Assembly: GCF_002113885.1 (NCBI RefSeq)
Contig: NW_018404492.1
Location: 5,200,258-5,264,257 of the forward strand
Source: Mizuhopecten yessoensis
Taxonomy: Eukaryota
Direction of reading: 5' to 3'
Length of the DNA stretch: 64,000 nt
In this document: positions 9,464 through 61,153 of the stretch, piece after piece
Layout of the letters: every line of letters starts with the position of its first letter
Numbering within the stretch: position 1 is the first letter of the stretch
Notes under the pieces: generated by a model
What the model was told of the DNA's origin: nothing
Databases searched by the model: none
What the model saw: only the letters and a program-made list of their open reading frames with translations
Program-made: the position numbers and the translations under genes

Positions 9464-12400
9464 ATGGCAGACGACGTTTTGGAGGTGGATATTTGGGAAG
9501 GTGATTGGGAACTTCCCTCCGTGGATTCAGACTGTTTGACTGTCTTGGTATATTGTTAACGCTTTTATTGACATTTCTCATATGTAAAATTATTGCATTG
9601 AAAACTATAGCTTTCCGTTAAATCTTAAATATGCGATCCCTGTACTTCAATAATCCGTAGGTCGGCAAAAGAAATCAGGTCAAAAAACTTATAGACTAAT
9701 AATATAACTACTACTAAGCTTTAGGGATACTAGCTTGAATTTTTGAAGTCTGGACGCTGGCAGAAAATGTCTAGATTCAGAGAAATATTGCTGAAATGCT
9801 ACGAAGGAAGAATTCTGGTCGTTTTCATATGTGCTGGACACACTAAGTGACTAAATACAATATAATGAAATGTAGTTACTGGCACCAGAGACGTGTAAAG
9901 CCAGTAGTATAAACGTCTCTGCTGGCACACATCGATTCATATTATTCAATAGTGTCCATCAATTACCTGTAGTCGTTTCTTTACTTGGTGCATTTTCTTT
10001 ATGAACCAAAGTTTTGGTATTCATTCATACCAGTTGCATCATTATTAATTCGTCTATGCGCGAAATTCAACTTCAGTAACAAAGATAAAAATGTTCATCT
10101 GGAAAATCATGAACCTTAAGAAAATTTGTTCTTCTTTAAATTACTTATCAATGGTAACGGGTTCTTTCACCCTAAATCCCTTTCACGCAAAGGGTTGTTT
10201 CGCCCTAAATCCTGATTGCCCAAGGTTGTTTCGTCGTAATTTTTAAAATTTTATACGCTTATATAATTAATTATTTAAATAAATTAACTTAACTTATTGA
10301 TAAAATTTCTATATTGGTGTTTGGTATATTTCATGTAGAAAAATGTGCATCTCTGTGAGTGCAGAGTCGGCTTTAAACAGCTGCTGTTTGTCGCACTTGC
10401 TTAAAAACAATAGACAATTTTTTTTCAAATTTATTTTAATGATATGGAAGACTAGGAAGACTTAAAACTACTAAAATTGAAAGGAAATACCAAACAATGC
10501 TTCGTCCTAAATTTCCTTGTTTTAGGGTGAAACAACCTAGCTCAAAACAACTTAGGGTGAACAGGATTTCGAGCGAAACAACAGGAACCCGTATCAATAC
10601 ACCAGGGTTGCAATGACCTGTAGGCAGAGCTAAAAAGTGCTTTGTTTCTGAGTTTTGTGACAGATGAATAACAATATGTCTTGAATAGTATGTCCTTCTT
10701 TTATGTGTCCACTAATTAAGTTATTTAACGTATCCTAAAATATATATCAATCAACCTTATTTTATGAAGAACTAGCAATGCAAACTAGCAATAGCTATAT
10801 AGTCAGCATTTGAGTTTTGGTCAGGCATGTCTGTACCCCTCGATATGCATGCCTAATATTCCTGAGGTCAGCTTAGGTCTGAGCCTCTCATTTCTTTTCA
10901 AGTTCAGCTTGTTGAAACAGTTTAACCGGATACGCAAAAGGGGCCCAGTATGATATACAATGTAAATTAGCAATTTTAGCTGAATCATGATACTGTTACA
11001 TGTTTTTGTATGATATATGCCAGCTCAAGACCAACCATTGTTAACTTCCTTAGGCCTTATTCCCTACATGTGGATTTGTATCACAGTTAATAAACTATTT
11101 GTCTTCTAGGCATTTTCAAAGTTTTGTGGAGTCCCATGTAGAGCGGTGAAAAGAAATAATCCAGTATGGACACCATCAGGTAATTTTATCAAGCTGGCAA
11201 AAAGGTGTTGGTCAATTTTTGTGTTAACCACAATTCCTGACTTTGATAGGCAGTTTCAACTTGCATCATTGTTGACCTAAGTTTAGACTGTATATATTAC
11301 ACACGTCATACATAACTCAACAGATGAGTAATATGCATTACAATCTTGCTGCAATTTCATTTGTCCAACCTTTTAAAGTACACAATTAATATTAATATAT
11401 GCTTTTTGTGTTTAGCAATGCAGATGAGTATAGTGTTGTTAAGTTTAATAGCACAATTAATATGTTGGCATGTGAATGTGATTGAAATGCAAACATTTTT
11501 TTCTGTCATTTATTGGCATCCCTGTCAAACTTCAGCACAGCCTTTACCCCTTATAAAAATTACTATGTTATACTATAGCTAGTTTGACTCATGGCTATAA
11601 AGGCAGGCATATAAAACTGGGACTTATCAAGTTAATAAGGGCTAGATTATTCATAGTTTGATAAATATTAACTATTGTACTTCTCACCTTGAATGATTGC
11701 ATATCATTTCCATCATTTTAAACATAAGTTTTCAAGACAACATTTTAAAATTGAGGAAGTTCCCACATATTTCATGTTGTCAAGAATTGCTGTGCGACTA
11801 TCATTTTTTTCTTTCAGGCACATTACCTGTTTTAAGGGCAGATGGAAAGTCTGTGTCAAAGATGTCAGAGATGTTAGAAATTATCAAAAAAAGGGTAAGA
11901 TTTATAATTACCGGTAGTAATATTTGAAAAATCTTTTTTTGGCATTAAAATGTTACTCATTATTGTTTTTCTTTTATTAGGATTTTATTTGTTTATCTAT
12001 TCAAATTGTTGTTTAAAAGAGAAGTGATGCCTTTGTTAAATCATCAATAGTCAAAATAAATTGGAAAAACCTGGTGTATGCATATACCGGTATCATTATC
12101 AGTGAACCATCTCTATTTTCTTCATGATTTTTTTTACTAACACAACAAATATTCTGAAATTTTAATAAACCAGCTTTTAAGAAATTAAGAGGATCATTTG
12201 ATGAATAGGTATGTGATATTATTGTAATGTTGATTTCTTACTCTATTGAATTTTAAGAGTCCAACTGGAGTGACACCCCAGGTGGGTCCAAATAATGCTG
12301 ATGTCAAGGCTTTCTCCTCCTTAATGGAGCAAAAGCTTTTACCTGCAGTAGTAAGTATACATTACCAAGATGATGGAAAGTTTCTAACAAAATAAGATGA

Positions 12401-57596: not shown

Positions 57597-58784
57597 TATT
57601 TACGTTTTCTCTTCCTTTTATGTTCTTTTTTAACTTATAATTTATATTTAAAATTAAAAGTGCCCGCCTTATCGACAGTCCACACAATTTCGTTCAATAA
57701 TTTGAACAGCGTGCTGATTGGCAAACAAAGTCGTACTTTGAAATTTTAACAAACACTTCAAAATTTTATTCCACAATTCAGTATCAATACAAATGCATAT
57801 GATATGTATATAAGGTGATTTAAGTTTATCAATAGAAATCTGAGCCGAAAGTTAAACTATAAATTGTTCCGATTTTCCCCCGGAACAAATTTCGCGCATG
57901 GATAAATACAGTGAACACCGTGAATCCGACCTTGACCTCAACGAGGGAGTTATTTTTGGAAGTTAATTCGAAGGTTTCTCTTTGGTCTCCAGACGTGAAT
58001 TTATTTGTTGATTGTATGGGAATCTGACTACAGTCGGTAGATTCTATAACAGCCTCGTTATTTGACGTGTCGTGATCAGAAACTGGGGAAACCGTGGCTG
58101 CGAGACGCGTGAAACTCTTAGTTGATTATATCAGAGACGTATTATACGTCTCTGATTATATACATCATCCCTATACATTCTCTATACATCGTGTTTGTAC
58201 ATCATGTACCACATATAAGGGCCAATAGTCCAAGCTTTGGATAAATGTTGACAATATTGACATTTGCGATATTATGATAAGTGAAGATCATAATTATTTT
58301 TCCTATCTAGTGTCAGGGATGTGTCCCTGACAATGTGTATCCACACAAAATCAGCTTGAGATTGAAATTTTGCAGACATAACTATAAAATAAAGGAAATA
58401 TAAAAACAACATTCAGTCAACTGTTATTGTATCAGTTGATTTATATACAATGCATTACAGAATTTTAAACAATCTTTGCTATTACGATTAGTTAATGAAT
58501 CTTTACTTGATCAACAATAATTTAAGATTTTAATAGCATGCAGGCGGCTAGTACCGTACTACCTGTTATAATATCTGTAAAATCATAAGTTATTTTCAGG
58601 TTAAATAAATATATCCATTTTATTTGTTTTAATATTCATATTTCATCACATGTCATTATAATTCTTTACAAAGAAAATGGAATATTTCTCTGATTAAAGT
58701 AGATATAAGTAATATGTATTACAATACCATCTACATCATTTTGAAACAGACTTTAACCAAATTGTGATCAGGTGTGAAAATTGA

Positions 58785-59316
58785 AATGTATGCTAGGTGA
58801 GATTAGGTATTTTAGAAATGTATGCTAGGTGAGATTAGGTATTTTAGAAATGTATGCTAGGTGAGATTAGGTATTTTAGAAATGTATGCTAGGTGAGATT
58901 AGGTATTTTAGAAATGTATGCTAGGTGAGATTAGGTATTTTAGAAATGTATGCTAGGTGAGATTAGGTATTTTAGAAATGTATGCTAGGTGAGATTAGGT
59001 ATTTTAGAAATGTATGCTAGGTGAGATTAGGTATTTTAGAAATGTATGCTAGGTGAGATTAGGTATTTTAGAAATGTATGCTAGGTGAGATTAGGTATTT
59101 TAGAAATGTATGCTAGGTGAGATTAGGTATTTTAGAAATGTATGCTAGGTGAGATTAGGTATTTTAGAAATGTATGCTAGGTGAGATTAGGTATTTTAGA
59201 AATGTATGTTAGGTGAGATTAGGTATTTTAGAAATGTATGTTAGGTGAGATTAGGTATTTTAGAAATGTATTCTAGGTGAGATTAGGTATTTTAGAAATG
59301 AATTCTAGGTGAGACT
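58785..59316. repeat. 32-bp minisatellite, about 17 copies (TAGAAATGTATGCTAGGTGAGATTAGGTATTT)
   Basis: Near-identical direct repeats with no spacers. Confidence 0.95.
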
Positions 59317-59507
59317 AAACCATTTAAATGATTCGACGACAGACCGATATGAAAAAAGTCGATAAAACGTCAGAATAATTCGGACTACAGGAGAACGGAC
59401 TCTCTCTATTACTATATTAATATATTTGCATATTTTAACTAGTAAAACGTTGTTATTTGTGGAAAAATGTTGGGGTGGGAGGGTGTGTAGCTTGGACTGT
59501 GTAATAC

Positions 59508-60327
59508 CACGGAATTAGATTATCTAAGTCCGTGGTAATACTCAACTATAGAATCACCAGTCAAGAACTAAACACTAATGAATATTCAATTCACACGATA
59601 GAGGCAGCATGTGTATCTATATGCGCACTGAAACAATTAGGTCAACGCAGGGGTGTCACTTGCGCTGGTGACACCCCCTTGGATCCGCCTCTGGCTAATC
59701 GTCAAGCTGAAGTTAGATGCAGGTTGTATTATAACGGGAATGCTAATATGTGCAAAATCTGATATATATTATATGCGGAAATTCGCACCGGTTCGCTACA
59801 GCTAGTTAAAACAAATTCTGTCTCAGCTCTGTATAATACCATCAATAAGATCCTCGTCACAAAAATCTAGATTTAACTATTTACACGTAGCATGCAACAA
59901 CACAGAAGCTTAATTGTTTCCCCCTACCACGGAATTAGATTAGTCCGTTATTTAAGTCCTTGCCCCTACAACAGCTGAATAATTTTTAACTCACAAACTT
60001 TGAACTCATTGAAAACAAATAAACATTTTATATAACTTAAATCAATGTAGAAAATAGGCCTTATAAAGGCTTTTTAATTTTAGTTGTAGTCCGCGTAAGT
60101 ATTGCTACTTAACAAACGGTACTATTATTTAAAATAACGTAATAACGAAATAACGGCAAGTGTCTGTAAAGGAAACGTTTTTTTTTTTTAAATTGTCGAT
60201 TCCATCCAATGACACTAGAAATGATTGGCGGCCTGACACGGGGTCGTTTACATGGACAGTCAACTTGATGTACGTTATATGTATCAGATTAATATGTTTT
60301 ATCACGGACTTGGATTCTAATTCCGTG
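59508..60327. mobile_element. Three 25-35 bp CACGGA(A/C)TT palindromes, each with its own 7-bp TSD
   Basis: 59508-59534 (TSD GTAATAC), 59928-59962 (TSD CCCCTAC), 60303-60327 (TSD GTTTTAT). Confidence 0.7.
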
Positions 60328-60462
60328 GTTTTATATAACCTTTACGGCAAGTTTATTGCAACGTCGAATACAACTCCGCACACAACACTAGTCTCAATTT
60401 TGAGTACTACTCACTGGATAGAAATATTCATCCTGCCCTCTCGCATAAAATTTAACATTAAT

Positions 60463-60496
60463 CAGAGACGTATAATACATGTATTATACGTCTCTG
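60463..60496. mobile_element. 34-bp perfect palindrome with 7-bp TSD (P-element-like footprint, family CAGAGACGT)
   Basis: CATTAAT|CAGAGACGTATAATACA-TGTATTATACGTCTCTG|CATTAAT. Siblings at 58132-58154 and 9886-9921. Confidence 0.7.
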
Positions 60497-61153
60497 CATT
60501 AATTAACCAAGAAACGGAGAATATTCACTGTAATGCATTTTCACTTTATAAAATATGTATCTGTACGACAGTGCAGACAATTTTTTGTCAAATGTTCAGG
60601 GCGATATCCGCCCCATTATCTTATATCAGTTTTACACTATGATTTTGTTTTCTTTGTAAATAATTCCACAGGAGCCTACAATTCTGTCAAAATTTAACAA
60701 TGACAGTAACACAAAAATATACCTATAATATGCATATTATAGTATTTTTTCTATTACTGTTCTTGTTAATTTTAATTCATAAAGCCATACCTATGAGAAG
60801 ATATGTCATTAATATCATTTCATGATGTGCGGGATCGACATTACTCCGTGTACAACTTGTAAGTTAAGTTGGCTAGGGACCGTAACATAAATCATCCGCT
60901 GTGATCTTGAAATAATCGAATGCGCCCCACTCTTGTTGATCGGAAGTCTTCTAGGACTTTCATAATTATACACTGGGTCATTCGGAAGGATGCTCTGGCT
61001 CCATTTTTTCCGCGAATTCTCACTGCGCAAACGTTAGAGATGCTGAAAATGTAACTTCCGGGAAGATGAAGATGGTTGTTGATTTTTTTTGGAAGGGAGC
61101 AAAATGATATGTAAGGGATTTTTGAAGACGTGAATCTATCTCTCACCCTCAAA

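Follow-up and report, generated by a model that had tools for sequence, protein, structure and literature searches.

The stretch considered here is a 64,000-nucleotide window of the Mizuhopecten yessoensis genome (C1165:5200258-5264257), in which short units bounded by transposon tips lie beside genes. The window holds three such units, of 23, 34 and 36 bp, each flanked by perfect 7-bp direct repeats (Table 1). Two of them had been described in a first-pass annotation, the 34-bp perfect palindrome between CATTAAT repeats and the 23-bp unit between ATTATAT repeats, and both are present exactly as it gave them; the 36-bp unit is an addition and combines ~17-18 nt from one tip with ~14 nt from the other across 3-4 nt of filler. 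The identical 23-mer is also found at C192:432556, C230:19179 and C449:425108, and its type of junction recurs at other loci. The window contains six occurrences of the 9-mer CAGAGACGT, where shuffles predict 0.12; none of 100 shuffles reached six. As had been proposed in the first-pass annotation, we read the units as donor-site scars of cut-and-paste excision by a DNA transposon family of the P superfamily, a reading to which we assign a probability of roughly 0.85. Each of the three outcomes that the annotation named as contradicting this reading was looked for, and none was obtained.

The 988-Mb assembly (82,659 contigs) was searched for paired 9-bp tips separated by a gap of 0-30 nt, which corresponds to units of 18-48 bp. 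The search returned 1193 loci genome-wide compared with two for the reversed pattern used as control; the count includes passenger copies and misses scars with mutated tips. Of the predicted mode or cap in length near 34 bp, the cap is evident genome-wide: 1014 loci measure 18-38 bp, 179 measure 39-48 bp and 60 measure 49-78 bp, several of the last being nested or tandem, and the density per bp of length falls from ~48 loci (18-38 bp) to ~2 (49-78 bp). Tips that are still joined to the inner repeat motif number 152 genome-wide, so the short units are several-fold commoner than intact ends.

Duplication of the flanking 7-mers, which was anticipated for most copies, was assessed in an unbiased sample formed by the first 50 of the listed paired-tip loci, with a shifted comparison as control. 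The flanking 7-mers are identical at 32 loci, differ by one mismatch at 12 and by two at three, so that 47 of 50 have at most two mismatches. The remaining three show at least five mismatches, two of these loci (L007 and L063) being nested or complex, and the shifted control peaks at five. At C22884, the flanks of a 34-bp unit belong to a multi-copy host repeat. Eight paralogous copies carry a single GTTGATG at this point, whereas C22884 carries the 34 bp and a second GTTGATG; the duplication was therefore created by insertion. The small contig C22884 was also considered in the search for allelic full/scar pairs and rejected, because the flanks lie in a multi-copy host repeat and the empty sites are paralogous, with no allele among them. 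In C3316, a further copy of the host repeat, a 30-bp unit has inserted independently at a distance of 4 bp and is flanked by a duplication of its own.

The insertion sites share a target motif. Over 83 distinct sites we find T at -3, T at position 2 of the target-site duplication (TSD), and A both at position 6 and at +3; every one of these four bases is found at 56-63 of the 83 sites, where the background is ~0.34 (p 3e-9 to 5e-15). A palindromic motif that reaches past the duplication is expected of insertions made by a transposase. Independent insertions 4 bp apart in copies of one host repeat were seen for CCCGTAT/ATACAGG (L045 versus L052-L057) and for GTTGATG/ATGGTAA (L048 versus L160), and such spacing fits a strong target motif.

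The amount of end sequence retained in the units has a sharp upper limit. In the parent elements described below the repeat continues past nucleotide 17 on both ends, so random breakage should yield 18+18, 19+19 and longer products. For subfamily A, to which the 34-bp unit of the window belongs, 59 loci keep at least 16 nt of both ends. Among the 50 of these that were listed, 20 are 17+17 and 13 are 16+16, which makes 34 bp the commonest product, and no palindrome of 18+18 or longer is present. The other listed loci mostly hold 16 or 17 nt per end around a filler of 1-10 nt; a small number are nested or tandem, and in a few others exactly 17 nt of one end meet 20, 23 or 42 nt of the opposite end. 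The 20 units of 34 bp are identical to one another, 18 have unrelated flanks and 19 have a perfect 7-bp duplication. Over the whole genome, retention ends at exactly 17 nt, followed by a base other than G, in 187 subfamily-A ends; nine retain at least 20 nt, three of them nested.

The position of this wall differs between subfamilies. Intact repeats have a tip of 17, 18, 19 or more nucleotides before the inner motif GAGATTGG, and when retention is measured relative to the base before GAGATTGG, the ends in the unbiased sample fall at 0 (n=22), -1 (n=10), shorter (n=25), +1 (n=2) and +7 (n=1). In subfamily B, which has a 19-nt tip, 149 ends stop at exactly 19 nt, although much of this list is a 30-bp scar that is probably of passenger type, and 38-bp palindromes of 19+19 are present. 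The tips of the autonomous copy are 18 and 19 nt long, and its scars cluster at 18 nt plus a short filler plus 19 nt. Walls at 17 and at 18-19 nt that match the tip length of the subfamily mean that the wall tracks a sequence boundary and not a fixed distance. It is the base just before GAGATTGG, 17 nt in the window's subfamily and 18-19 nt in its sisters. The earlier proposal of the same 17-nt staggered cut as in Drosophila therefore holds for subfamilies with 17-nt tips and fails as a fixed length. Scar retention is indirect evidence for long staggered cleavage, which would leave tails of ~17 nt.

Long elements share these ends, as had been foreseen. The 17-mer of the palindrome occurs 395 times genome-wide, with some occurrences paired ~1 kb apart. 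These pairs delimit non-autonomous elements of ~1 kb with 7-bp duplications and a terminal inverted repeat (TIR) of ~30 bp that runs past nucleotide 17 as GAGATTGGCAACT. Three such elements (Table 1) contain internal tandem repeats of ~210 bp. The ~1-kb elements have no similarity by blastn or tblastx to 25 P-like loci (+/-1.5 kb), and the link was made instead through end-specific repeat patterns. These patterns detect 87 and 140 copies of the two ends, and two of these ends lie ~6 kb from the genome's two best matches to P transposase.

The copy on contig C5526, 8,498 bp between 7-bp duplications, encodes a 765-aa open reading frame (ORF) on its minus strand that matches PF21787 (8e-24), PF21788 (1e-20) and PF21789 (8e-7), all above the curated cut-offs. 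These domains constitute the core of P transposase, namely RNase H-N, the GTP-binding insertion and RNase H-C, and the ORF also matches the sequence of PDB 6p5a, the Drosophila P transposase, at 1.6e-17. An ORF with the same three Pfam domains is present in the second copy, on C5342. The copies on C1613 and C5526 are 99.6% identical over 1.1 kb, so the family was active recently. Duplications of 7 bp flank the 8.5-kb, 8.2-kb and ~1-kb elements alike, and the tips read CAGAG, which fits the terminal consensus CANRG of the P superfamily. The family thus has the RNase H-like domain split by a GTP-binding insertion domain, the 7-bp TSD and the CANRG terminus that characterise this superfamily.

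Several kinds of junction are found within the units: flush joins, trimmed tails, overlaps of 1-8 nt indicating microhomology, and filler that copies nearby tail sequence. The pairs of ends in the scars mirror the parental pairs, with AAAGCC accompanying ATATAACAC as in the autonomous copy and ATAATACA accompanying AAATACA as in the 1-kb element. The junction tables for end joining at Drosophila P{wa} contain the TSD and a 17-nt tail on each side, with the same classes of junction (PMC2895639), and a 17-nt stagger for P transposase is stated in a zebrafish study that cites Beall and Rio 1997 (PMC10983969). On this model, a family with ~30-bp TIRs starting CAGAGACGT makes a 7-bp TSD on insertion. 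At excision its transposase would cut the transferred strand at the element tip and the other strand within the repeat, directly 5' of GAGATTGG, so that 17 nt of transposon sequence would remain on each flank as a 3' tail (18-19 nt for the sister subfamilies). End joining of the two tails would give TSD, up to 17-19 nt, up to 17-19 nt and TSD, with variants arising by trimming, microhomology joins or short copied filler. The scars with their duplications, the retention wall, the long elements and the P-type transposase gene within them are seen in the sequence; that this transposase made the cuts, the polarity of the tails and their repair by end joining are what we infer.

Several observations weigh against this interpretation. 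Part of the genome-wide count consists of passenger copies carried within other repeats. A 30-bp scar in four copies (L101-L103 and L017:439) has one common set of flanks and represents a single event among the sampled 50; many copies of a 30-bp unit are probably passengers too, the flanks having been checked in these four only. Such passenger scars with common flanks are older than the amplification of their host repeats. In about six subfamily-A scars one end is retained over 20-42 nt. Flanks from two 1-kb elements, one flank being unique and the other itself a repeat, gave no haplotig in BLAST and no allelic pair of full element and scar; with no locus that has the full element in one allele and the scar in the other, we infer excision at these particular sites. 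Stretches of N in the autonomous copies leave the transposase gene incomplete. Full-length elements had been expected to encode a THAP domain together with the P transposase; the P core is there, while the available upstream ORFs have neither a THAP match nor a C2CH signature, the 5' part of the gene falling in an 870-N gap (C5526) or past the contig end (C5342). None of 149 THAP matches genome-wide lies within either autonomous copy, to which the same gap and contig end apply. Finally, identical junctions of 34, 32, 30, 33 and 35 bp occur at many unrelated loci, which amplification of a tiny element also predicts.

This last point bears on the possibility that the 20-45-bp palindromes are ultra-short members (micro-MITEs) of the miniature inverted-repeat transposable elements, or MITEs, in which case the transposase would cut out and insert the units themselves and a fresh 7-bp duplication would arise with every insertion. 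Identical 34-bp units at 18 unrelated loci with perfect duplications would be expected of such elements, as would the identical 30-, 33- and 35-bp units at unrelated loci, and the sites carry the family target motif as any real insertion would. The lengths and junctions, however, grade almost continuously between 20 and 45 bp, with trimming, microhomology and copied filler, and do not comprise a few amplified sequences. The wall keeps its position regardless of what lies opposite, be it a long piece, a short one or one set apart by filler, and it moves to 18-19 nt with the subfamily. The units also lack the inner repeat motif GAGATTGGCAAC, and an element no longer than the sum of the two staggers would be expected to keep no duplex after P-type cleavage. 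A recurrent 60-bp composite (for example C42:209609-209668; L063-L070), the one short composite checked for amplification, was rejected as a mobile mini-element since it is a passenger with the same flanking repeat in all eight copies examined. We consider the micro-MITE explanation improbable and, with the first-pass annotation, favour scars over MITEs given the absence of the inner motif and the graded series of junctions.

Slightly less probable again is interrupted gap repair, by which the units would be internal-deletion derivatives: after excision the element is partially re-copied from the sister chromatid or homologue and the two nascent strands are joined, with no need for a fixed staggered cut. 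The route is documented for Drosophila P elements (PMC2895639), units of 49-78 bp with longer end pieces exist, and a few loci combine an end of exactly 17 nt with an opposite end of 20, 22, 23 or 42 nt. It predicts a broad spread of retained lengths, whereas subfamily A has its 187 ends at exactly 17 nt and ~6 beyond 20, and the drop in locus density beyond 38 bp is likewise at odds with it. Interrupted gap repair probably accounts for a minority of longer products and not for the main class. Excision by another superfamily such as hAT, or chance or regulatory hairpins, is very improbable: CAGAG does fit the hAT terminal consensus (YARNG in Repbase conventions) as well as that of P, but the duplication is 7 bp, the transposase encoded by the tip-bounded elements is of P type and includes the GTP-binding insertion domain, hAT excision forms hairpins on the flanks and retains little transposon sequence if any, and the window shuffles and reversed-pattern control exclude chance.

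Table 1. Positions of the scars and their duplications in the window, and of related elements and reading frames elsewhere in the assembly.
Feature	Position	Strand	Remarks
TSD left copy CTGGCAC (7 bp)	9879..9885	.	read directly
36-bp scar, sister subfamily, AAAGCC-type tip	9886..9921	.	tips compared with the two ends of the autonomous copy
TSD right copy CTGGCAC	9922..9928	.	read directly
TSD left copy ATTATAT (7 bp)	58125..58131	.	read directly
23-bp excision scar	58132..58154	.	16 nt of one tip and 11 nt of the other, 4-nt overlap (microhomology)
TSD right copy ATTATAT	58155..58161	.	read directly
TSD left copy CATTAAT (7 bp)	60456..60462	.	read directly
34-bp scar, subfamily A	60463..60496	.	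perfect palindrome, 17 nt and its reverse complement; both 17-nt tails fully retained
TSD right copy CATTAAT	60497..60503	.	read directly
Long copy	C5526:64720-73217		8,498 bp including 870-N gap, between ATACGAG duplications
Transposase ORF of C5526 copy	L071:577-2874	-	765 aa
Second ORF of C5526 copy	L099:1855-2943 (C5526:66454-67542)	+	~360 aa
Second long copy	C5342		runs off contig end
Transposase ORF of C5342 copy	L072:577-2310	-	same three Pfam domains
Second ORF of C5342 copy	L097:1865-2944	+	~360 aa
Third long copy	C1613:2800953-2809190 (L139)		8,238 bp between AGTGAAT duplications, interior given as N
~1-kb elements	L001:1501-2514; L005:415-1517; L025:1501-2706		internal tandem repeats of ~210 bp
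Second-tip-family units	C1125:221941-222006; C4184:489986-490061; C5548:976323-976387		
Long-frame P-like matches	C4995:2027846; C201:513278; C76738:671410		774 aa; 718 aa; 528 aa

Further features of the long copies were noted. The 18- and 19-nt tips are swapped relative to the inner sequence between the C5526 and C1613 copies, which looks like inversion of the body by recombination in the shared inner repeat motif, or exchange of tips during repair. A second ORF is encoded on the strand opposite the transposase in both the C5526 and C5342 copies (Table 1). It is 70% identical between two subfamilies with a dN/dS (ratio of nonsynonymous to synonymous substitution rates) of 0.15, and searches gave no Pfam match, no Atlas hit and no meaningful sequence match in the PDB. 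An AlphaFold2 model from the two-sequence alignment had a mean predicted local distance difference test (pLDDT) score of 34 and is unusable. The product may be an accessory protein. A more specific account, which we hold tentatively and at somewhat less than even odds, is that the inner cut is set by sequence, between CA and GAGATTGG, and not by a 17-nt ruler, so that one enzyme would produce 17-, 18- and 19-nt tails at different ends, with the second, constrained gene as a possible accessory.

Other P-like sequences are present in the genome. The RNase H-N domain of P transposase has 25 separate genomic matches, several with long open frames (Table 1), and these, like the 149 THAP matches, may represent other P-like families or domesticated THAP9-like genes. 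The P-like locus on C201 was rejected as a tip-bounded element, as CAGAGACG there lies within the ORF and is not a repeat tip. A second family of tips, CACGGAMTT...AAKTCCGTG, forms units of ~22-27 bp that are sometimes nested within CAGAGACGT scars; the nested unit on C1125 has its own 7-bp duplication, ATTATAC. These tips probably mark a P-like sister family with scars of the same type.

To our knowledge, direct measurements of the long staggered cut of a P transposase exist for the Drosophila enzyme only. Here the genome sequence alone documents a P-type cut roughly a thousand times over in a distant family of P-like elements, and this record would show conservation of the long stagger, with a length that tracks a sequence boundary within the repeat. 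The scars provide a ready data set of natural double-strand-break repair junctions (blunt, microhomology and filler) in an animal without genetic tools and, if the cut is indeed set by sequence, the thousand or so fixed scars would amount to a natural inventory of how germline ends were joined in a non-model animal. They also mark the former sites of elements, including sites beside genes such as those in the window. Repeat finders will tend to label such units as tiny MITEs or palindromes, and annotation as excision scars is preferable.

The closest known system is the P element of Drosophila melanogaster, with which the scallop family shares a ~30-bp repeat starting CA..G, an RNase H fold into which a GTP-binding domain is inserted and 17-nt tails at the donor ends that give TSD, up to 17 nt, up to 17 nt and TSD, with microhomology and copied filler. 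The P element differs in its 8-bp TSD, compared with 7 bp here, and in its length of 2.9 kb, whereas the scallop copies are 8.2-8.5 kb and have an additional conserved ORF. In the scallop the tail measures 17, 18 or 19 nt, depending on subfamily and end, and stops before GAGATTGG; the scars are about a thousand fixed genomic fossils, while those of the P element are laboratory products. The Drosophila elements Galileo and 1360 (Hoppel) make a 7-bp TSD, as does the scallop family. Galileo differs in its very long repeats of hundreds of bp, and we know of no genome-wide record of tail-length scars for it. Both elements share the P-superfamily transposase (PMC4168063, PMC2775673). Zebrafish Pdre2/THAP9 likewise belongs to the P-like elements found outside insects, and its non-autonomous copies of ~1 kb are excised by a transposase of THAP9 type, but its duplications are 8 bp, and the zfTHAP9 excision products have larger flanking deletions, with the tail length of the zebrafish transposase not given (PMC10983969). 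MITEs formed by microhomology-mediated miniaturisation (for example PMC3814204) are also short and place two transposon ends between a TSD. They differ in having complete repeats, usually in elements of ~100-600 bp, and in amplifying as homogeneous sequence families at unrelated sites, whereas the scallop units lack the inner half of the repeat with its motif and form a graded series of junctions with a fixed wall.

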